IMG/VR virus record: IMGVR_UViG_3300029258_002750
Location: 186,001 to 250,000 of that record
Length of the DNA: 64,000 nt
Direction: 5' to 3' (one strand)
Below the pieces are notes generated by a model that worked only from the letters and a program-made list of their open reading frames with translations, was not told where the DNA came from and searched no databases. Shown piece by piece: positions 3 through 8,747 of the stretch (its first letter is position 1; the number at the start of each line of letters is the position of its first letter). Made by a program: the position numbers and the translations under genes.

Positions 3-56
3 TCGCTGAACATCTTCCGCAACCGGCTCAAGACCGCAATTGGAGGACAGTCGTGA
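3..56 (+). CDS. 3' end of an upstream gene (partial, ...SLNIFRNRLKTAIGGQS*)
   Basis: Open frame from the window edge ending in TGA 54-56, overlapping the GTG start of the next gene (GTGA coupling). Confidence 0.4.
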   Translation, partial: SLNIFRNRLKTAIGGQS

Positions 57-607
57 GTTTCTACGATCGCATCGTCGAAGGCGGCGGCTACGACGACCCG
101 CCCGACCTTTCCGAGTTCCAGCGCCAGGTGCTCAGGGCTGCGCGGGCGACGCCCAGCGTGAGTGGCACGGGCCGGTTTATCGGCGGAAAGGCGGCGGGTT
201 CAGTCATCAAGACCATGCGCAAGCAGGGCGTCACCGTGAAGGCGGCGGAGGGCAAGAAGAAGGTAGAGAAGGCGCTCGCCCAGCTCCACAAGCGCGGCCT
301 AGTCTGGACCCGGCGCGAGGGTACCTGGTCCGGCAAGGCAGGTGGCGAGGTCTTCCACACGCGCGTCTCCACGCCATCCGCAACCTCGATCAAGAGGGGC
401 GGCTACGTCGACCTGTTGCTCAAGAAGCTGAAGAAGGCTGGCATCAAGACGGCGACGACGTGCCAGCTCGACTACAGCAAGACCCTGAACCGGCGCGAGG
501 GGATCGGTATGTCCATCGCCGATGTCGTGAAGCTCGCCGCACTTCCGTCCTTCAAGCTCCCGACGAAGGACGAAGCCCGCGCCCACAGGCACGCGAAGGG
601 GAAGTAG
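53..607 (+). CDS. Basic hypothetical protein, candidate internal head protein
   Basis: 184-aa Lys/Arg-rich ORF, GGAGG upstream, coupled to both neighbours. N-terminus MSFYDRIVE resembles the T4 capsid-targeting sequence (MKTYQEFIAE). Confidence 0.7.
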   Translation: MSFYDRIVEGGGYDDPPDLSEFQRQVLRAARATPSVSGTGRFIGGKAAGSVIKTMRKQGVTVKAAEGKKKVEKALAQLHKRGLVWTRREGTWSGKAGGEVFHTRVSTPSATSIKRGGYVDLLLKKLKKAGIKTATTCQLDYSKTLNRREGIGMSIADVVKLAALPSFKLPTKDEARAHRHAKGK

Positions 608-1092
608 TGGTCCCGTACGGTCTGGCAGAAGGAGCGCTCATCTACGCGGCCGATGGTTCGATCATCATGCCAACGTCGATCGAGAAGCTCGCCAAGACCG
701 GGGAGCAGCCCGAGGTTCTCGCCTACCACAAGAAGAAGGACAGGATCGTCAAGGTTGTGGCGCAGTACCCACGGATGGCCAGTACCGAGGCCGAGATCGT
801 GGAGGTGACCCTCTTCAACATGCACAAGCTCCGATGCACGCCGAACCACAAGGTGCTCACGACGGTTGGCCTCATCGAAGCCAGGGACCTGAGGACGGGC
901 GACAAGCTCGTTAGTCCGTCTGCCGGAGCGGGCATTCCCGGCCAGTTCATGTTCACCGCCAACAGGGCCAATCGCGTGGCGGTCGCGGGCGACCCTGTCC
1001 CAGCTGGAAAAGCGCGTGTGTTCGACATCACCACCACGACGGGCAACTTCGTTTGCGAGGGTATCGTCGTCTGCGGCAAGGATGCGAAGTGA
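607..1092 (+). CDS. Free-standing Hint (intein-like) domain protein, splicing residues degenerate
   Basis: GTG at 607 overlaps the upstream TAG. Block A-like GLAEGALIYAADGS, block B LRCTPNHKVLT, blocks F/G VFDITTTTGNFVCEGIVVCG. Has G where Cys1 is expected and CG where His-Asn is expected. Confidence 0.8.
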   Translation: MVPYGLAEGALIYAADGSIIMPTSIEKLAKTGEQPEVLAYHKKKDRIVKVVAQYPRMASTEAEIVEVTLFNMHKLRCTPNHKVLTTVGLIEARDLRTGDKLVSPSAGAGIPGQFMFTANRANRVAVAGDPVPAGKARVFDITTTTGNFVCEGIVVCGKDAK

Positions 1093-1826
1093 GCATTGCG
1101 GGCGACACGGTTATCCACACCCTCACCGGCCCGCAAACCGTCACTCGCATCGCCAACACCGACAAGGCTGTTCACGTCTTCGCCTGGAACGGGGCGAAGA
1201 TCGCGGGCGGCCGGATCTACATTCCGCCGACACCGTGCCGCGCTCAGACGTATCGCGTCGTCCTCGACAACGGCCGCAGCTTGCGGGTCAGCGCCGACCA
1301 GCGCTTCCTGGTATTCACCAAGAGCGAACCGAAGGGCGTTGAGACCGTTCAGGCGATAGACCTCAAGCCGGGCACGAGCCTGCTCCCCCTCTACCTCGGT
1401 CGTATCAAGCAAGGTGGCTATCCGACCTTCAAGCAGGTGGGCGATCATTGGAAGCGATCGGCGTGCGCCAGCGACCGGAAAAGATGGCGGAGCGTCGCTC
1501 GAATGGTGTATGAATGGGCCTCTGGCGACGCTCTCGTTCCTGGGCTTCGGGTGAAGCACAAGGACGGCAATCCTGACAACTGCCACCCCAAGAATCTCTA
1601 CATCGACGGGACCCCACGGCCGGGGAACCGCAGCAAGCTCAATCGTCTTCTCGATCTCCAGAGGAAGATCATGCCAGGCAACCACAAGGTCGCCGGTTGC
1701 GAACCCTGGATCGAAGAGGAAGATGTATACGACGTCCTTCCACAAGACTGCTCGAGCGTTGCGGCGACCGAGGTCTTCTTGGGGGTCGGCGAGGAGACTG
1801 GAGGACTAGATGGCCCTCCGCGATAG
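1089..1826 (+). CDS. Free-standing intein-like protein (Hint + HNH endonuclease domain), splicing residues degenerate
   Basis: GTG at 1089 (GTGA overlap). Block A MSIAGDTVIHTLTG, degenerate block B LRVSADQRF, LKPGTSLLPLY, HNH-like ARMVYEW...VKHKDGNPDNCHPKNL, block F NHKVAGCEPWIEEEDVYDV. No terminal HN. Confidence 0.75.
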   Translation: MSIAGDTVIHTLTGPQTVTRIANTDKAVHVFAWNGAKIAGGRIYIPPTPCRAQTYRVVLDNGRSLRVSADQRFLVFTKSEPKGVETVQAIDLKPGTSLLPLYLGRIKQGGYPTFKQVGDHWKRSACASDRKRWRSVARMVYEWASGDALVPGLRVKHKDGNPDNCHPKNLYIDGTPRPGNRSKLNRLLDLQRKIMPGNHKVAGCEPWIEEEDVYDVLPQDCSSVAATEVFLGVGEETGGLDGPPR

Positions 1827-3711
1827 GGCGGTCAAGGCGCTCCGAAACGTGTTCGGCGCTCCTCAAGCGGAGCGCGCCAAAGCCGACTCGCCCTCGGTCG
1901 CGGCGATGCGGCATCACGTGCCCAGCATGTTCACGGTCTGGGGACGCGAGGACATCGGCGGCCTGCTCACCGTCTCCCAGTCCCTCATGGATCGGTTCGC
2001 CGACTACGAGGCGATGGAGGAGTACCCAGACATCAACTCGGCCTTCCACTACTTCGCTAATGACGCGACTCAGCCCTCGGTCAAGGACGGCCGATGCATC
2101 TGGGTCCAGTCGGAGGACAGTGCGATCAAGGGCCTGGGCGACGACCTGATGCATCGGACGCTGCGGGTCGAGGATGAGATCTGGCCGCAGGCGTACGGTC
2201 TCGGGATGATGGGCAACGACTATCTCGAGCTGCTCATCACCGAGAACGGCGTCGTCGGGACCAACACGCTCCCCGTGCCCACGATGAGGCGCGTCGAGCG
2301 GCTTGACGGCGGCCTGATCGGCTTCGTACAGGACGTGACCGGCCAGTTCACCGCGAACAGCCAAGAGCTGCGGCGGATGCTCGCAGGCAATGTCGAGATC
2401 CCCAGGAGCCTCGCCCTGTTCGAGGACTGGCAGGTCGCCCACTTCCGACTGCGCGCGACGCGGCGGCGCATTCCCTACGGCGTCTCCGTCGCCGAGGGCG
2501 CCCGTTGGATCTGGAAGCGCCTGGTGATGCTCGAGGACAGCGTGCTGATCTACAAGCTCACACGCGCGCCAGCTCGCTACGCCTACTACATCGACACGAC
2601 GGACGTGCCATCCGATCAGGTCGGGTCGTTCCTCCAGAAGGCGAAGAGGGACCTCAAGAAGAAGCGGATGGTCAACCCCCGCTCCGGTCGCCTGGATCTC
2701 CGCTACAACCCGCTGGCGAGAGACGAGGACTTCTTCATCGCCGTTCGCGAGGGCCGCGAGCTGGCCCGGGTGGACGTCCTCTCCGGTCCCGACTACCAGG
2801 CTGTCGATGACGTGGAGTACTTCAAGCAGATGCTCCATGCGACGCTGAAGGTCCCGCGCGCCTACCTCGGCAAGGACGAGGCTCCGCCGTCGAAGTCGAT
2901 CCTCTCGAACGACGACGTGCGGGCGGCCAGGGTGACCTTGAACCTCCAGCGCGAGCTGAAGATCGGCTGGGAGCGGATCATCCGCACGCACCTGGCCGCG
3001 CGAGGCGTGCGCGATCCCTGGAAGCCCGAGTTCACGATCGAGATGACCATTCCTTCGGGGATCTGGGAGCTGTCGGCCTACGAGACCCTCAATGCGGCGG
3101 CCGACTATGCGAGCCGGATCCAGCCGTGGGTCAGTACCCGCTGGATTCAGGAGAAGATCCTCAAGTTCTCGGAGGAGGAGATCAAGGAGATCGAGAAGCA
3201 GCAGAAGAAGGACTCCGAAGAAGAGCAGTCCGGCGACCTGCCCAGCTATGCGATGGGCGGTGCCCAGGGAGGTCCGCCGGAGGCTCCGCCACCTGGCGGG
3301 GAGGAAGAGCCCGAGGAACCCGCGCCCGAGGAGAAGGAGGGCGAGGAGGAAGAGGGGACTCCCAAGCCGAAGCCTGCGCCCAAGCCTGCGCCGAAGCCCA
3401 GGGCTCCTGCGGTCGGGAAGTCGAAGAAGGCGACGCCGGAGGAGATGAAGCGGTGGGACTATGAGCGGCGGCTCGAGGAGTGGAAGTACAGGGAGTCGAA
3501 CCGGCGGCACGCCGAGATCATGGACAAGCTCGGCCAGCTGACAAAGGATGATCCGGGCTTCGCCAGGCGCGATCGGGAGCGCCGTGCGTTCTTCGAGGAC
3601 GTGCGCGGCCTACTCCGGCGAACCAACGGCGGCGGCATCGCTGTACCGCCTGGGGGGAAGTTCTCCCGGAAGGAGCTGCTCTCGATGTCCCGAAGATTCC
3701 ACGGCCGGTAG
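1810..3711 (+). CDS. Portal protein (T4 gp20-like)
   Basis: gp20-family motifs DYEAMEEYPDINSA, LEDSVLIYKLTRAPARYAYYID, YNPLARDEDFFIAVREG. GGAGG RBS. Position before core, protease and capsid genes. Confidence 0.93.
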   Translation: MALRDRAVKALRNVFGAPQAERAKADSPSVAAMRHHVPSMFTVWGREDIGGLLTVSQSLMDRFADYEAMEEYPDINSAFHYFANDATQPSVKDGRCIWVQSEDSAIKGLGDDLMHRTLRVEDEIWPQAYGLGMMGNDYLELLITENGVVGTNTLPVPTMRRVERLDGGLIGFVQDVTGQFTANSQELRRMLAGNVEIPRSLALFEDWQVAHFRLRATRRRIPYGVSVAEGARWIWKRLVMLEDSVLIYKLTRAPARYAYYIDTTDVPSDQVGSFLQKAKRDLKKKRMVNPRSGRLDLRYNPLARDEDFFIAVREGRELARVDVLSGPDYQAVDDVEYFKQMLHATLKVPRAYLGKDEAPPSKSILSNDDVRAARVTLNLQRELKIGWERIIRTHLAARGVRDPWKPEFTIEMTIPSGIWELSAYETLNAAADYASRIQPWVSTRWIQEKILKFSEEEIKEIEKQQKKDSEEEQSGDLPSYAMGGAQGGPPEAPPPGGEEEPEEPAPEEKEGEEEEGTPKPKPAPKPAPKPRAPAVGKSKKATPEEMKRWDYERRLEEWKYRESNRRHAEIMDKLGQLTKDDPGFARRDRERRAFFEDVRGLLRRTNGGGIAVPPGGKFSRKELLSMSRRFHGR

Positions 3712-3773: not shown

Positions 3774-4607
3774 GTGAACGACGCAGCCATCATCAGTCTC
3801 CTGCGCAACGTGAGGCAGGCCGACGACGTCCTCTCGCGTCTGCGGGATGGGTCGCTCGAGGTCCGGCGGGAGCGGATCGCCGAGGCGTTAGCCAGCCCCG
3901 ACTGGGCTGCCGGACCGGCGCAGCTCCTTGCCACGTACCCGCACCACGCGCTCATCGAGAAGAACGACATCCTGATGCGCGTCCGGGTCGAGGAGGAGGA
4001 CGGCAAGATCGAGTTGGGCGAGGTGGAGGTGTTCGACATCCCCGACAAGGTGGGGGATGTCGGTGCCGAGGTCATGGAGACAGCCAAGGCGGCCGTCGAC
4101 CTGATCCTGGCGGACGACTACGACGCTGCGACCCCGCTTGTTGCGGGCATTGCCAACGCGCTCAACTACAAAGGCGATCTCGGCGAGCAGGTCGCGACCG
4201 AAGTGTCCAAGCGTTCCATCCAGCGGGACGCCTGGTGGCACAAGGTCGTGCGCGAGGGAGTCGGCGAGGACGCGCAGATCGAGATCCCTGCTCCTCGCGC
4301 GAACGACCTGCCGGGGAGTATCGACGATCTCCGAGAGGCGCTGACGACGGCCGCGAGGACCGTGGCGGAGGTCGTGCAGCAGATCCCCGGGGAGCGCGCC
4401 ACGAAGGAGATCGTGGAAGCGGCCCGGGACATTGCGGCAGACATGAAGTACGCCATTCAGGCGCTCGGTGCCGCGAGCCGTGACGACGAAGCCGAGCTGG
4501 CAGGCGTCTACGAGGGCGTGTCCGGCATGGCGAGCCACCTTCTGATGGGTGCCAAGTTCCTCGCGAGCCTGGCCGAGCAAGACACCGCGAACGCAACGAA
4601 GGAGTAG
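3774..4607 (+). CDS. Hypothetical protein (head assembly region)
   Basis: 277-aa ORF with genome-typical codon usage, AAGGGAG upstream of GTG. Confidence 0.75.
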   Translation: MNDAAIISLLRNVRQADDVLSRLRDGSLEVRRERIAEALASPDWAAGPAQLLATYPHHALIEKNDILMRVRVEEEDGKIELGEVEVFDIPDKVGDVGAEVMETAKAAVDLILADDYDAATPLVAGIANALNYKGDLGEQVATEVSKRSIQRDAWWHKVVREGVGEDAQIEIPAPRANDLPGSIDDLREALTTAARTVAEVVQQIPGERATKEIVEAARDIAADMKYAIQALGAASRDDEAELAGVYEGVSGMASHLLMGAKFLASLAEQDTANATKE

Positions 4608-4611
4608 GACC

Positions 4612-5862
4612 ATGATGCTGGGAGACCAAGGACCCCAGACTTCGATCGAGGAGGATCTTCAGGCTCTCGGAATGGGTCACCTTCTCGCTGAGGCCGACAC
4701 TTGCCCGTCCAGCAAGGGCGACGGGGATGACGACGACGAGGACGAGGACGAGGGCAAGGAGGAACAGACCGAGGCGCGCGAGTACGACGAGGAGACCGGC
4801 CGTACCGAGATCGAGGTTCGCGCCGAGGACGAGGACGAGTACGAGATCGACGAGGACGAGTTCTTCGAGATCGTCGGCGAGTTCATGGAGTCGCTCGATC
4901 TGGACGAGGACCAGGTCGACGACGCCCTCGAGAGCGAGGAGTTCACGGACATCTTCGTCGAGGCCCTCGTGGCGAACGATGCCCTGGACGAGATCGACGA
5001 GGACGAGGAGGACGAAGAGATCGAGGAGGACGAAGACGAGATCGACGACCCCAGGATGGAGGCCGCTGCCGATCTGCTCGGCCTGTTCTACGATCATCTC
5101 CAGACCATGACCGAGGACGACGACAGGCCCAACTACGACGACCTGGTCGGAGTGATCGAGGCGTTCGAGTACCTCACGGACGGGATCCTCGACGAGACCA
5201 AGCGGACGATGGGTCTCCGCGCCCTCCGCAAGGCCCGCCGGACGAAGAGTCGCCTGGCCAAGCGCGGGAAGATGAAGCGGTCGACCTTCAAGGCCGCGAA
5301 GCGCGGCCGGATGATGATCGGCGGCCACGAGTTCAAGGCCGGTGCCGCGTCCCGCGCCCAGTTCCGCAAGCTGATGCGGAGCGCGAGCCCGAGGCGCCGG
5401 AAGGCCCTCAAGAAGCGGCTCAAGGCTCAGATGGGCGTGACCTCCAAGGACGTCAAGGCCCGGATCACCGGCAAGAAGATGGCAGCCGACGTGGAGCCCC
5501 AGGGCAGCCCGATCTCCGAGCTGGTGCAGCACCTCAACGACCTGCGCGAGGCCGTCCAGAGCGACGACTCCGCCGCCGAGGAGCTGGTCGACGGGCTCAG
5601 GAGCGTCTTCGAGACGGCGACCACCTTCTACGAGCGGATCGCGGAGGAGGTCAGCAGCGACGAGTCGATCGAGGAGGAGGACAAGGAGGACGACCCGCGC
5701 GTGGCGATGGGTCGGCACCTCGAGTCGATCGCCGAGGACTCGGCGGCCGTCGCCCAGCGGATCGTCGAGGGAGAGGCGGACATCAACGACGCGGCCGACG
5801 ACCTGCGCGCCCTGGCGGCGGACCTCGACGATGCGATGGAGGCGATGAAGGGGATCGAGTAG
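4612..5862 (+). CDS. Acidic/basic prohead core protein (T4 gp67/gp68-like position)
   Basis: ATG at 4612 after AAGGAG. Very acidic flanks around a K/R-rich core (LRALRKARRTKSRLAKR...RRRKALKKRLK). Lies between portal and protease like T4 core genes. Confidence 0.6.
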   Translation: MMLGDQGPQTSIEEDLQALGMGHLLAEADTCPSSKGDGDDDDEDEDEGKEEQTEAREYDEETGRTEIEVRAEDEDEYEIDEDEFFEIVGEFMESLDLDEDQVDDALESEEFTDIFVEALVANDALDEIDEDEEDEEIEEDEDEIDDPRMEAAADLLGLFYDHLQTMTEDDDRPNYDDLVGVIEAFEYLTDGILDETKRTMGLRALRKARRTKSRLAKRGKMKRSTFKAAKRGRMMIGGHEFKAGAASRAQFRKLMRSASPRRRKALKKRLKAQMGVTSKDVKARITGKKMAADVEPQGSPISELVQHLNDLREAVQSDDSAAEELVDGLRSVFETATTFYERIAEEVSSDESIEEEDKEDDPRVAMGRHLESIAEDSAAVAQRIVEGEADINDAADDLRALAADLDDAMEAMKGIE

Positions 5863-5915: not shown

Positions 5916-8747
5916 ATGACGACAAACAGGCGCGTGCTGGTCGACCACTACGGTCCTCCCATGAAGATGCAGATCCTCGAGGGGAAGGACGGCGGCAAGC
6001 TCGTTGTCGAGGGCAAGATCGGCCACGTCGACAAGCCCACGGCGAACAACCGCGTCTACCCCCGCTCGGTCATGGAGAGGGAGATCGGAAGACTCCGGCC
6101 CCGGATCGAGCAGGGGTCCGTCATCGGGGCAGTCGATCATCCCGGTGATGGCAAGTGCCTCGGCCTGGGGACTCCGGTTCTCATGGCCGACGGTCGCGTG
6201 CTCCCGGTCGAGGAGATCGTCACCGGCGACCGCCTCATGGGACCGGATGGCAAGGCGCGGACGGTGCTGGCGACGACCGCTGGCACCGGCCCGCTCTACC
6301 GGGTTGACCCCAAGAAGGGCGATCCGTGGGTCTGCAACGACAAGCACGTCCTGACGCTGGTCCACACGTCCAACGGCGAGGTCGTGGACATCCCGGTCGA
6401 GGACTACCTCGACAAGAGCATCTACTACAAGAGCCGCTACAAGCTGTTCAGCACCGGCGTCGAGCGGTTCGAGGACGAGGCCGAGCCGCCCAGCGTCGAT
6501 CCCTACTTCCTGGGCGCCTGGTTCGGTGATGGTTCCAAGACGAAGATCAACTTCGTCGCGCCCGAGACGATGGGTCTGTCGGCTGTGCGCGCTGTGGCGA
6601 TCACGACCATCGACCCGGAGATCCGGGAGATGTGCGAGGACATCGCCGCCAAGTGGGAGGTTCGCGTCAACGAGGTTCCCAAGACCACGGGGACCGAGGC
6701 CGTCACGCTCTACCTGTCCACTGACAAGGGGCAGGACAACCGCCTGCTCCGCGCTGTGCGCGATCTCGTCGGGCCGGACATGCGCGTTCCCGATCAGATC
6801 GTGCGCGGGAGCCGCGAGACCCGTCTCCAGTTCCTCGCCGGTCTGATCGACACCGACGGGCATCTCCAGCACAACTGCTTCTACATCACCCAGAAGCGCG
6901 CCGACTACGCACAGGTCGCGCACCGGATCGCCAAGTCGCTCGGCTTCCAGGCCGTGCTCTCCACGCGCAAGGTGCAGGGCTACAGCGACGACTACCACAC
7001 GCTCACCATCTGGGGCGACGTGGAGCAGATCCCGACCCGTCTGGAGCGCAAGAAGGCCGAGCTGCGCGAGCAGCGGAAGGACGCGCTCAGGACCGGGTTT
7101 ATCGTCACGCCCATCGGAACCGGCGACTACGCCGGGTTCGAGCTGGACGGCGACGGTCGGTTCCTGCTGGGCGACTTCACCGTCAGCCACAACAGCCGGA
7201 TCCGGGAGGGTGGCTGCATCGTCCGAGGTCTCTGGATCGAGGACGATGGCACGATCAACGGCAAGTTCGAGGTCGTTGAGGAGGCCGACGCGGGTCGCAA
7301 CCTCGCCGCGTTCCTGCGGCGGGGTGCGGCCATCGGCATGTCCAGCCGGGGCATGGGTTCCACGTCCACCGGCCCCCAGGGCTGGGACGTGGTCGGCGAG
7401 GACTTCAAGCTCAACACGTGGGACTTCGTGGCCGATCCGGCCTGCCACGACGCCTACCCGTCCGTGATCTCCGAGGACGTGGACGGCGAGGGCAAGCCCA
7501 CCGGCAAGCTCGTGGTCAACCCCGAGGAGGTCAACGAGACGGTGCTGCGGCAGCACTTCCCCGACGCGGTTCGCGTGATCGAGCAGCACGCGATGCGCGT
7601 GGCCTCGGAGACGGCGGCCGAGGACGCCGACGACCGGGTCAACGGCGAGGTCGAGTCCCAGAAGGAGGAGATCTACAAGAAGGCGATCGACGAGCTGCGC
7701 GAGGACTTCGCGGCCAAGCTCGTCCGCGCGCTGGCCGAGATGCGCACGAAGGTCGAGGAGGACGTCCGCAGCGACTTCGCGAGCGACCCCGAGACGGCTG
7801 GCGCCAAGCTGGCCCTCAAGAAGATCGCCGAGATGGTCAACCCCTATGCCCCGTCGCCGGACGAGAAGAAGGTCTTGGACGAGAAGGACGCCAAGATCGA
7901 GGAGCTGTCCCAGGCAGCGGACGAGCAGGAGAAGAAGGCCCGCGATGCCGAGCTGCGCGTCGTCCGCGTCGAGGAGAAGACGCGCGAGCTGGCCTTCCAG
8001 CTCTACGTCGAGCAGATGATCGGCGGTCGCGAGGACCGCGAGAACGTCCGCGACCTGATCGGCGACCTCTCCGCGTGCAAGAACGCCGAGGAGCTGAAGA
8101 CGCGAGTCGAGTCTGCGCTGACCTCGATCGAGGAAGCCCAGATGTCGGCGAAGAACGAAGCGAACGAGGAGGCCGAGGCTGCGATCCGGCTCGCGGAGGA
8201 GCGAGCGAGCGACGCCGAGATCGCGCTTGCCCAGGCGGAGGCACGCGAGAAGCGCTACCGCGCCGAGGTCACCAAGCGGTTCGAGGCTCTGGAGTCCCAG
8301 CTGACCTCGGCCATCGAGAGCAAGGACGAGGAGATCGGTGCGGCCCGTGCCCGTATCGAGGAGCAGGCCGACATGCTGGAGCGGGCGGTCACCGCAGGCA
8401 CCCGCGCGAAGCTCCTGGCCTACGCGAGCGACCGCACGGTCGGTCACCCGCACCGCGACGCGATCATGGAGGACGTGAAGAACGACGAGCTGACGTCCAT
8501 CAAGGAGATCGATGCTCGCGCTTCCGAGACCGAGCGTCGAGCGCAGGAGCCGGGCGGCCCGATGGAGCGGGTGCGCCGGTCCATGAGTGCCGGTCGCGAG
8601 CACATCACCGAGGACGAGCGACGCGCGTTCGAGGCGAGCGAGAACCAAGGTTTCGTCGGTGGGGACGATGCTTCCCGGGACCTGGAGTACCTGGGAACGT
8701 CCTTGACCGAGCAGCAGCGCTTGGCCGGGAGGACCCGGCGAGCTTGA
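5916..8747 (+). CDS. Prohead protease (T4 gp21-like) with intein, fused to a C-terminal coiled-coil scaffold (gp22-like)
   Basis: TANNRVYPRSVMEREI, GAVDHP (catalytic His), AIGMSSRGMGS (catalytic Ser), WDFVADPA. Long E/A/K/R-rich C-terminal region. Directly upstream of the capsid gene. Confidence 0.9.
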   Translation: MTTNRRVLVDHYGPPMKMQILEGKDGGKLVVEGKIGHVDKPTANNRVYPRSVMEREIGRLRPRIEQGSVIGAVDHPGDGKCLGLGTPVLMADGRVLPVEEIVTGDRLMGPDGKARTVLATTAGTGPLYRVDPKKGDPWVCNDKHVLTLVHTSNGEVVDIPVEDYLDKSIYYKSRYKLFSTGVERFEDEAEPPSVDPYFLGAWFGDGSKTKINFVAPETMGLSAVRAVAITTIDPEIREMCEDIAAKWEVRVNEVPKTTGTEAVTLYLSTDKGQDNRLLRAVRDLVGPDMRVPDQIVRGSRETRLQFLAGLIDTDGHLQHNCFYITQKRADYAQVAHRIAKSLGFQAVLSTRKVQGYSDDYHTLTIWGDVEQIPTRLERKKAELREQRKDALRTGFIVTPIGTGDYAGFELDGDGRFLLGDFTVSHNSRIREGGCIVRGLWIEDDGTINGKFEVVEEADAGRNLAAFLRRGAAIGMSSRGMGSTSTGPQGWDVVGEDFKLNTWDFVADPACHDAYPSVISEDVDGEGKPTGKLVVNPEEVNETVLRQHFPDAVRVIEQHAMRVASETAAEDADDRVNGEVESQKEEIYKKAIDELREDFAAKLVRALAEMRTKVEEDVRSDFASDPETAGAKLALKKIAEMVNPYAPSPDEKKVLDEKDAKIEELSQAADEQEKKARDAELRVVRVEEKTRELAFQLYVEQMIGGREDRENVRDLIGDLSACKNAEELKTRVESALTSIEEAQMSAKNEANEEAEAAIRLAEERASDAEIALAQAEAREKRYRAEVTKRFEALESQLTSAIESKDEEIGAARARIEEQADMLERAVTAGTRAKLLAYASDRTVGHPHRDAIMEDVKNDELTSIKEIDARASETERRAQEPGGPMERVRRSMSAGREHITEDERRAFEASENQGFVGGDDASRDLEYLGTSLTEQQRLAGRTRRA
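6156..7193 (+). mobile_element. Intein with LAGLIDADG homing endonuclease (346 aa) in the prohead protease
   Basis: Starts CLGLGTPVLMADG and ends GDFTVSHN followed by Ser(+1). LAGLIDADG motifs YFLGAWFGDGS and FLAGLIDTDG. Confidence 0.95.

Follow-up and report, generated by a model that had tools for sequence, protein, structure and literature searches.

A portal mini-intein turned free-standing gene that has lost its splicing residues in an uncultured phage

The window analysed here is a 64,000-nucleotide stretch of IMG/VR record IMGVR_UViG_3300029258_002750 (positions 186,001 to 250,000 of that record), and the gene of interest, henceforth referred to as ORF1, lies at 607..1092 on the plus strand. 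ORF1 encodes 161 aa, starts with GTG, ends with TGA, and is translationally coupled to both neighbours. Its GTG (607-609) overlaps the TAG (605-607) of an upstream 184-aa ORF of unknown function (53..607, +), while its TGA (1090-1092) overlaps the GTG (1089-1091) of the next gene, ORF2 (1089..1826, +). A purine-rich Shine-Dalgarno-like stretch, GAAGGGGAAG, is found at 595..604 (+), 3-12 nt upstream of the start codon. The same GGGGAAG + GTG arrangement is seen in L009 (related loci are designated by L numbers and homologous proteins by P numbers), in which the upstream ORF is replaced by an unrelated gene. GC content by codon position in ORF1 is 0.60/0.44/0.82, like the flanking genes, whereas the upstream DNA read in the ORF1 frame gives 0.87/0.59/0.49 and is not coding in that frame, so there is no N-extein. 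The sequence was reproduced without differences or indels in contigs of two sequencing runs of 2018 and 2021, although either may be the window's own source. A single copy of this family is present in the 275-kb genome.

The ORF1 product has a confidently predicted Hint/mini-intein fold. The Pfam Intein_splicing family (PF14890) scored 38.3 bits against a cut-off of 35.8, the AF2 model has a pLDDT of 91.5, and the top Foldseek matches are the NpuDnaB and Mtu RecA mini-inteins (TM 0.8-0.9). Only 4 residues precede and 4 follow the Hint domain. PHROGs returned only weak hits, to intein-containing head and helicase families, and no nuclease family was hit in Pfam or PHROGs; the 161 aa are filled by the Hint fold. 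Megablast of 6 kb and tblastn of ORF1 against 50,697 phage records gave no match, and the best cultured portal relative is only 31% identical, such that no annotated relative was found.

Catalytic positions were assigned by alignment with 22 active relatives. Gly5 (619..621, +) sits where Cys1 is found in 22 of 22 inteins, and this Gly is invariant in the window subclade. Cys156-Gly157 (1072..1077, +) replace the terminal His-Asn, and Lys replaces the +1 Ser. The block B motif TPNH is retained at residues 78-81 (838..849, +), as is the block F Asp, D140 (1024..1026, +). These two features are not conserved in the gene's own orthologues, however, with P0004 carrying TPEY and VFH. The block B His is 100% conserved in active inteins but present in only 42% of free-standing copies, and the block F Asp becomes His in P0003/P0004 and N/M/T/Q/A in other free-standing copies. 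Overall, Cys1, the block B His, the block F Asp, His-Asn and the +1 Ser are 91-100% conserved in the 22 active copies and at most 42% conserved in 12 free copies. Charge and pI showed no pattern between free and intein copies.

ORF2 is a second free-standing intein-derived gene of 245 aa with Hint-N + HNH_3 + Hint-C architecture, identified by Pfam and PHROG HNH hits and by an AF2 model (pLDDT 85) whose best PDB matches are inteins. It lacks the block B His and the terminal His-Asn. Its HNH_3 core motif (H157 ... N164 ... N169-L170; 1557..1598, +) is intact, while the first His is replaced by F/Y in one subclade (L018, L019, L022, L025, L026, L056). ORF2 evolves with a dN/dS of 0.17-0.25, and homologues are active portal inteins in P0011, P0012 and P0013. 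ORF1 is not a duplicate of ORF2, as pairwise BLASTP found no significant similarity (best E 3.1), and the two represent different intein lineages. A programmed frameshift fusing ORF1 to ORF2 was also rejected, since no slippery site is visible and gene order differs between lineages.

The T4 gp20-like portal gene (1810..3711, +; Pfam Portal_T4, 4.9e-51) follows ORF2 and is intein-free in this phage. A profile search of 1.84 billion proteins with the ORF1 family gave, as best non-family hits, portal proteins with contiguous ~150-aa inserts (E 1e-46 to 1e-30), flanked as EYPDIN|C...HN|SAF. The corresponding site in the window's own portal gene, N76|S77 (EYPDIN|SAFHYF; 2035..2040, +), about 950 bp downstream, is uninterrupted. 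A second empty site, E67|A68 (ADYE|A; 2008..2013, +), is the position at which P0011/L115, P0012 and P0013 carry an active ORF2-type Hint-HNH intein.

HMM scans of related loci showed that the ORF1-type element occurs in one of three mutually exclusive forms in this uncultured phage clade. It is an active portal intein in L017, L018, L019, L021, L022, L024, L025, L026, L033, L034, L052 and L056. It is an active intein nested in the ORF2-like gene, with an empty portal site, in L027 and L051, and in P0019, whose 603-aa portal is intein-less as judged by length; P0023, P0025, P0027 and P0031 show the same nested architecture, as judged without their genomic contexts. It is free-standing, with an empty portal site, in the window, L005, L011, L013, L014, L029, L031 and L111, and in the contig of P0156, whose 605-aa portal is intein-less as judged by length. 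P0156 itself is a truncated family member of 139 aa with an extra 79-aa ORF upstream. L009 and L010 also carry free copies, but their contigs end before the portal. No sufficiently complete locus has two copies and none has zero, within a sample of about 30 metagenomic lineages, some of them retrieved through ORF1 homology. Mutual exclusivity could be a trivial consequence of relocating a single, poorly mobile element. An ORF2-type element is present in every locus that reaches far enough upstream, either as a portal intein (codon 67/68) or as a free-standing gene just upstream of the portal. Distant T4-like phages (portal 25-30% identical) have neither element.

Purifying selection on the free-standing copies was measured as NG86 dN/dS. 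Values were 0.11 (0.07-0.18) for L013-L031, 0.16 (0.09-0.29) for L029-L111, 0.25 for L010-L005 and 0.47 (0.31-0.74) for window-L005, compared to 0.06-0.26 for active inteins and 0.05-0.09 for the portal. The window subclade is the least constrained, reaching 0.69 (CI reaching 1.13) against the mosaic L009, and free copies sit on long branches, which is compatible with relaxed constraint. The number of exits from the portal is unresolved: the ML tree and the portal tree suggest 2-3 or more events, but the AU test does not reject a single origin (p 0.12-0.18).

The original prediction, that this is a free-standing Hint-domain gene with its own coupled GTG start, essentially no exteins and altered splicing termini, was borne out. 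Its interpretation as a domesticated intein fold kept as an expressed gene in the head operon was supported only in part. The conditions named beforehand as refuting it did not materialize, in that a Hint fold is predicted, the free-standing copies show purifying selection rather than neutral decay, and the upstream DNA is not coding in the ORF1 frame. Retention as a gene at the start of the head module under purifying selection is supported, but the emphasis on an intact block B carries no functional weight, the proposed link to the prohead protease intein is not supported, and the suggested role as a decoy or modulator of splicing has no positive evidence. Descent from the mini-intein of the adjacent portal gene and the intein origin of ORF2 had not been recognized.

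Taken together, the sequence comparisons demonstrate that ORF1 is the free-standing descendant of a mini-intein that interrupts the adjacent portal protein at EYPDIN|S in sister phages, that it now lies outside the portal gene as its own coupled cistron, that it has lost its splicing chemistry while keeping the predicted Hint fold, and that it has been maintained by purifying selection in at least three diverged subclades. It is therefore considered a domesticated ex-intein rather than a decaying relic, a rare case of an intein co-opted as an ordinary protein. The route of exit, expression and biochemical role are inferred. Local rearrangement or illegitimate recombination at the ORF2/portal junction between intein-bearing and intein-free alleles would have produced the free copy. 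L011, which still starts with the portal-like MALR and keeps Cys1 (MALRRQEK|C...), looks like an intermediate, and in L013, L014, L029 and L031 the start codon sits exactly at the Cys1 position. An overall probability of roughly 0.6 is assigned to this reading.

The mechanism is much more tentative. In this view, the gene delivers directly the polypeptide that sister phages release by splicing, a ready-excised mini-intein, and this non-catalytic Hint protein would work as a binding or accessory subunit with the Hint-HNH protein and/or the portal N-terminal region, in homing/recombination or in head/packaging initiation, without itself splicing, cleaving or cutting DNA. Structure prediction of an ORF1 + ORF2 complex returned a score of 0.00, counted neither for nor against, so the partner hypothesis has only genomic-linkage support. 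No direct evidence of expression was obtained, as only DNA metagenomes were listed as holding the locus in a run search that was not dedicated to RNA. The samples that hold the phage are of sediment and seawater. A bolder and doubtful, though not excluded, possibility is that the excised polypeptide is itself a required factor for this clade, acting with the Hint-HNH protein and supplied by three interchangeable routes: spliced out of the portal, spliced out of the Hint-HNH protein, or translated on its own once splicing is lost. In that case an intein product would have acquired a post-splicing function, with the free-standing gene as the end point of intein domestication.

Among the alternatives, the best surviving, although unlikely, is that ORF2 is an active free-standing HNH homing endonuclease descended from a portal intein and that ORF1 is merely co-converted with it, as a relic of a two-intein homing unit or of collaborative homing, with no function for the phage. 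In P0011/L115 and P0013 the two elements are portal inteins only 8-9 codons apart, so they would home together, and the HNH motif is intact in the window's ORF2. Between the window and L009, identity rises from unrelated, to 78%, to 100% towards ORF2, with the boundary inside ORF1, which resembles an exchange boundary at a nuclease gene (PMC10448857). Trans-homing of a defunct element by a neighbouring free-standing HNH gene also has precedent in mobE/I-TevIII (PMC2790892). Hitch-hiking does not, however, explain protein-level purifying selection on ORF1, ORF2-type elements are not sporadic, and ORF2 stays constrained in the subclade that has lost the first HNH His. Additionally, an intact ORF2 coexists with an empty portal site whose DNA is nearly identical to the extein junction of intein-bearing alleles, and it therefore probably does not cut that site.

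Slightly less likely is that ORF1 is a relic on its way to deletion, kept open only because ribosomes must read through it to reach the coupled downstream genes, or because a high-GC genome rarely generates stop codons. Loss of catalytic residues, long branches after release, the dN/dS of 0.47-0.69 in the window subclade, the long spurious ORFs of GC-rich genomes, and the published inactive intein pseudogene Arth_1007 (PMC3196547) are in its favor. Against it, dN/dS is well below 1 in three free-standing subclades, down to 0.11 and equal to or below active inteins, length and Hint-core residues are retained, and there are no frameshifting indels. The most diverged free copy (L029, 57% GC; end branch 3.6 substitutions/site) is still detectable by HMM, and none of the free-standing lineages examined has lost the gene, although deleting a free ORF is easy.

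The originally proposed trans-acting modulator or decoy, regulating the phage's own protease intein or poisoning the portal intein of competing sister phages during co-infection, is improbable. Its closest relatives are active portal inteins of sister phages, an L009-like variant strain of the window's own phage, also with a free-standing copy, co-occurs in metagenomes holding the window's sequence, so that related strains meet in the same samples, mini-inteins can domain-swap (PDB 5bkh, among the fold hits of the ORF2 model; PMC8175363), and the window's protease does carry an intein (aa 81-426, C...HN|S). That intein, however, belongs to another family (Hom_end_hint/LAGLIDADG), and free-standing Hint genes persist in phages whose protease shows only Peptidase_S77 and an intein-less length (L014, L029, L111). 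Residues that would contact a splice junction (block B His, block F Asp) are not conserved, and contiguous inteins fold in cis. Finally, a still-working class 2/3-like or split intein with overlooked exteins, despite TPNH, the block F Asp and the PF14890 score, is refuted by the sequence: there is no nucleophile at position 1, no Trp-Cys-Thr class 3 signature given Asp rather than Cys at block F:4, no terminal Asn/Gln and no +1 Ser/Thr/Cys, ORF1 holds a complete contiguous Hint domain and ORF2 is itself a complete Hint + HNH, the upstream frame is non-coding by GC3, and the conserved GTG lies 4 codons before the domain in all orthologues, even where the upstream gene differs.

Inteins are usually regarded as purely selfish elements, with a life cycle of invasion, fixation, decay of the nuclease and, rarely, precise loss, and whether an intein or its excised product can become useful to its host is an old open question. 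This locus offers a natural series in closely related phages, in which the same 150-aa Hint element appears as an active portal intein, as an active intein nested in another ex-intein, and as a free-standing, catalytically dead gene that is still selected, with a second element (Hint-HNH) showing the same intein/free-gene duality. How inteins leave host genes, whether excised inteins have functions, and how intein-derived endonucleases become ordinary genes are thereby made directly testable. The locus also warns annotators that a PF14890 hit in a phage is not necessarily a splicing element.

The closest known systems are the active class 1 mini-inteins of the T4-like portal proteins of sister phages (e.g. 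P0005, L017, L021), which share with ORF1 the family (E 1e-46, 38-44% identity over the whole 150 aa), fold, size, lack of an endonuclease domain and genomic neighbourhood, but are in-frame inserts with Cys1, TxxH, Asp, His-Asn and +1 Ser, whereas ORF1 is its own cistron with Gly1 and Cys-Gly and, inferred from sequence, cannot splice. Bacterial intein-like (BIL) and Hedgehog Hint domains (PDB 2lwy, 6y75 and 1at0 among the fold hits) also use the Hint fold outside canonical splicing, but are domains of larger proteins, often secreted or variable in the case of BILs, that retain autoprocessing chemistry (Cys1 and/or a C-terminal Asn); ORF1 is free-standing and lacks both, and its nearest sequence relatives are true inteins, not BILs. 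Two short uncharacterised phage proteins in BFVD (A0A1S5RCV4, 143 aa, Lactobacillus phage P1; A0A2Z3EFP0, 172 aa) seem to consist of a Hint domain only, at 15-18% sequence identity. Free-standing HNH homing endonucleases acting on a neighbouring gene's defunct element (T4 mobE/I-TevIII, PMC2790892; collaborative homing, reviewed in PMC2988022) match the geometry of ORF2 and the portal mini-intein in sister phages, in which an HNH gene sits immediately next to a gene carrying a self-splicing element without its own nuclease. Those cases involve group I introns, the nuclease activity of ORF2 is only predicted, and in the window the mini-intein is no longer in the target gene. Yeast HO endonuclease, a domesticated free-standing relative of the VMA1 intein PI-SceI, likewise left its host protein, lost splicing and was co-opted, and is the best analogue for ORF2 and for the general process, but HO keeps a nuclease and has a known function while ORF1 is a bare Hint domain. 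Arthrobacter sp. FB24 Arth_1007, a phage-derived 'DnaB' intein with almost no exteins that lacks essential catalytic residues and is unable to splice (Tori & Perler 2011, PMC3196547), is a single orphan interpreted as a pseudogene, whereas ORF1 belongs to a family of at least 13 sequences in three subclades, at a fixed locus and under purifying selection.

The 275,101-bp IMG/VR virus record from which the window was taken (bases 186,001-250,000) carries direct terminal repeats. A 161-aa ORF with a GTG start, henceforth referred to as ORF1, lies at 607..1092 (+) of the window. Its start overlaps the TAG of an upstream 184-aa ORF (TAGTG, 605-609), its TGA overlaps the GTG of the following ORF (GTGA, 1089-1092), and a GAAGGGGAAG stretch precedes the start. 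GC content by codon position (0.60/0.44/0.82) matches that of the neighbouring genes, while the upstream DNA read in the ORF1 frame looks non-coding (0.87/0.59/0.49), and there is thus no hidden N-extein. The stretch was reproduced with no differences and no indels in contigs of two runs of 2018 and 2021, either of which may be the window's own source.

ORF1 was identified as a Hint domain by the Pfam Intein_splicing model, which scored 38.3 bits, above the 35.8 cut-off. An AlphaFold2 model built on 28 sequences had a pLDDT of 91.5 and superposed on the NpuDnaB, NrdJ-1 and Mtu RecA mini-inteins at TM 0.8-0.9. When ORF1 was aligned to 22 active relatives, Gly5 occupied the Cys1 column, TPNH corresponded to block B, Asp140 corresponded to the block F Asp, and Cys156-Gly157-Lys replaced His-Asn-Ser. 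The original prediction of a free-standing Hint-domain gene whose splicing termini are knocked out is therefore confirmed. However, orthologues show TPEH/TPEY, VFH and Ser-Ala at these positions, and the residues that had been described as intact are leftovers and not conserved features.

The origin of ORF1 was examined by a profile search of 1.84 billion representative proteins, which returned four kinds of hit: the gene's own family; long T4-like portal proteins as the next-best hits (E 1e-46 to 1e-30); ORF2-like proteins, related to the product of the gene following ORF1, with the same mini-intein nested inside them; and a few short free-standing proteins. In the long portal proteins the whole 150-aa domain is an insert flanked EYPDIN|C ... 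HN|SAF(H/R)YF, indicating that these are active mini-inteins. The window's own portal gene (1810..3711; Pfam Portal_T4, 4.9e-51) reads EYPDIN|SAFHYF without interruption at N76|S77 (2035-2040), and its DNA at this site is nearly identical to the joined exteins of intein-bearing alleles.

About 30 distinct related loci (designated by L numbers, with individual related proteins designated by P numbers) were collected through ORF1 homologues and, independently, through the portal protein, and were scanned with HMMs of ORF1, ORF2 and the portal. In the clade whose portals are at least about 50% identical, the ORF1-type element is present exactly once per locus, in one of three mutually exclusive forms. 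In the first form it is an active intein in the portal at codon 76/77, as observed in L017, L018, L019, L021, L022, L024, L025, L026, L033, L034, L052 and L056. In the second form it is an active intein nested inside the ORF2-like gene, where it sits in the HNH motif in L027/P0021 and near block F in P0019 and L051; the portal site was read as empty in L027 and L051 and was inferred to be empty for P0019 from a portal length of 603 aa. P0023, P0025, P0027 and P0031 have the same nested architecture near block F, as judged from the proteins without their genomic contexts. In the third form it is a free-standing, catalytically dead gene with the portal site empty, as observed in the window, L005, L011, L013, L014, L029, L031 and L111, and in the P0156 contig as judged by its 605-aa portal length. 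L009 and L010 also carry free-standing copies, but their contigs end before the portal.

The order of the free-standing genes is Hint-HNH-portal in the window, L005, L013 and L031, and HNH-Hint-portal in L011, L014, L029 and L111. In L013, L014, L029 and L031 the initiation codon sits exactly at the Cys1 position. P0156 is called as only 139 aa, lacking the first ~21 residues, with an extra 79-aa ORF just upstream on its contig, which is possibly a disrupted copy or a mis-called start. Distant T4-like phages (25-30% portal identity) have neither element, and the window's genome has a single copy of ORF1.

The neighbouring gene, ORF2 (1089..1826 (+), 245 aa), is also a free-standing, intein-derived gene of Hint-N + HNH_3 + Hint-C arrangement, in which an HNH_3 core (VKHKDGNPDNCHPKNL, 1551-1598; H157 at 1557-1559) is inserted in a Hint fold. 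HNH hits were obtained with both Pfam and PHROG, and the AF2 model had a pLDDT of 85 with inteins as its best PDB matches. The protein starts Met-Ser-Ile-Ala-Gly-Asp-Thr, but has SADQ for block B, without the block B His, and no terminal His-Asn. A free-standing ORF2 homologue sits immediately upstream of the portal in every locus that reaches far enough upstream, except L115/P0011, where no free copy was found upstream. There, and in the portal proteins P0012 and P0013 (considered without their genomic contexts), the ORF2-type element is itself an active portal intein at ADYE|C...HN|S, only 8-9 codons before the mini-intein site, and in P0012 the mini-intein is nested in that portal intein. 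Both elements therefore alternate between intein and free-gene states and always co-occur. In the ORF2-like genes upstream of the portal in L018, L019, L022, L025, L026 and L056, which form a subclade, the first His of the HNH motif is Phe or Tyr, yet the gene keeps a dN/dS of about 0.23, which suggests a non-nuclease role for the Hint-HNH protein.

Further inteins were observed in the same genome and in its relatives. The portal of L005 (11204-14446), a 63%-identical sister phage, carries a LAGLIDADG intein at LIYKL|C..HN|T that the window's portal lacks, and other relatives have 4-6 inteins in the portal (L024, an ORF of 2600 aa; L022, more than 2124 aa), including tandem and nested ones (P0008, P0012). 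Within the window, the S77 prohead protease (5916-8747 (+)) carries a 346-aa Hom_end_hint/LAGLIDADG intein (6156-7193; aa 81-426) with canonical termini (K|CLGLG ... SHN|S). The family A DNA polymerase of the same genome (G000:C1, about 40.8-43.7 kb; L002, 19-2859) carries a mini-intein, with PF14890 scoring 31.8 bits within a DNA_pol_A protein. Between the portal and the protease lies a 437-aa, extremely acidic (Asp/Glu-rich) ORF (4549-5862 (+)) with no family hit, which is probably a scaffold or core protein. Its listed start overlaps the preceding ORF by 59 nt, and the true start is probably further downstream.

The five splicing positions are 91-100% conserved in the 22 active copies and at most 42% conserved in 12 free copies, while the Hint-core positions remain conserved in both groups. 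Pairwise NG86 dN/dS values with bootstrap intervals for the free copies were 0.11 (0.07-0.18) for L013-L031, 0.16 (0.09-0.29) for L029-L111, 0.25 (0.14-0.45) for L010-L005, 0.47 (0.31-0.74) for window-L005 and 0.69 (0.41-1.13) for window-L009, compared to 0.06-0.26 for active mini-inteins, 0.10-0.25 for ORF2 and 0.05-0.09 for the portal. The window's own subclade is the least constrained. No free copy shows frameshifts, and none of the free-standing lineages examined has lost the gene. Free copies sit on long branches. This pattern fits a burst of change on release from the portal followed by renewed purifying selection, which indicates domestication rather than neutral decay.

While the Hint identity, the relationship to the portal mini-inteins, the three alternative locations and the constraint on the free copies were demonstrated by the sequence analyses, both the route by which the element left the portal and its present role are inferred. 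The free ORF of L011 (2501-3010) reads MALRRQEK|CVAEG... and ends ...HM|SGESE. It starts like the portal (MALRDR...), retains Cys1, block B (TPDH) and the +1 Ser, and appears to be an intermediate between portal intein and free gene; the gene caller had picked a later ATG. It looks like a truncated portal 5' end fused to the intein, which is what an illegitimate crossover between an intein-bearing and an intein-free allele at the ORF2/portal junction would leave. The intein tree places L013+L014 next to the L017 portal intein (98/93), and the portal tree nests window+L005 among intein-bearing portals (99/99), forcing 3 or more changes, but a single origin could not be rejected by the AU test (p 0.12-0.18). 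In several intein-free alleles the +1 Ser at portal codon 77 has since changed to Ala (L013, L031), Asn (L027) or Thr (L051), and sites with Ala or Asn could no longer support splicing of a re-inserted intein.

Nothing in ORF1 can splice, cleave or cut DNA. Universal retention of the element in one of three forms, its fixed position beside ORF2 and the portal, and selection on the dead copies together suggest that the polypeptide itself is used. The preferred reading is that it may act as a non-catalytic binding partner of the Hint-HNH protein and/or the portal N-terminus. This reading is tentative and rests on genomic linkage only, since the complex prediction was uninformative. A general search of sequencing runs, not dedicated to RNA, found no RNA run with the locus.

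Of the alternatives, an unlikely but better-supported one is that ORF1 is a selfish hitch-hiker of an HNH homing endonuclease. In its favour, comparison of the window (400-1400) with L009 (1129-2039) shows an exchange boundary inside ORF1: the upstream gene is unrelated, the 5' 210 nt of ORF1 are about 78% identical, the 3' half is 97-100% identical, and the first 220 nt of ORF2 are identical (compare PMC10448857). The same variant occurs in two metagenome runs, X5 and X8. However, hitch-hiking does not explain the protein-level constraint on ORF1, ORF2 is fixed, and one subclade lost the first HNH His while staying constrained. A relic kept open by translational coupling is contradicted by the dN/dS values. 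The splicing decoy is the weakest of these three alternatives, as the protease intein is of another family (LAGLIDADG type) and free Hint genes persist where the protease has no intein (L014, L029, L111). The interpretation put forward in the original prediction is accordingly only partly supported: a domesticated intein fold is borne out, but a decoy or modulator of splicing linked to the protease intein is not.

The feature is real, and it is neither a working intein nor a pseudogene. Its fold and family are those of class 1 mini-inteins, but three defining features of an intein, namely insertion in a host protein, the position-1 nucleophile, and the terminal Asn with a +1 nucleophile, were tested and found to be lacking. 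Literature searches for domesticated, degenerate or inactive inteins found nothing closer than the one published extein-poor dead intein, Arth_1007, which was interpreted as a pseudogene (PMC3196547). A recent survey of actinophage inteins describes non-canonical nucleases and free-standing HEGs but, in the passages retrieved by a term search, no free-standing dead mini-inteins (10.1101/2025.01.02.630785). BFVD contains a few uncharacterised Hint-only phage proteins, and the phenomenon may therefore be wider. Exapted intein-derived genes are already known; what differs here is that the gene is a bare Hint domain with a traceable origin in the gene next door, with any function being inferred. 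The process resembles the domestication of the yeast HO endonuclease from a VMA1-type intein, an analogy that fits ORF2 better than ORF1.
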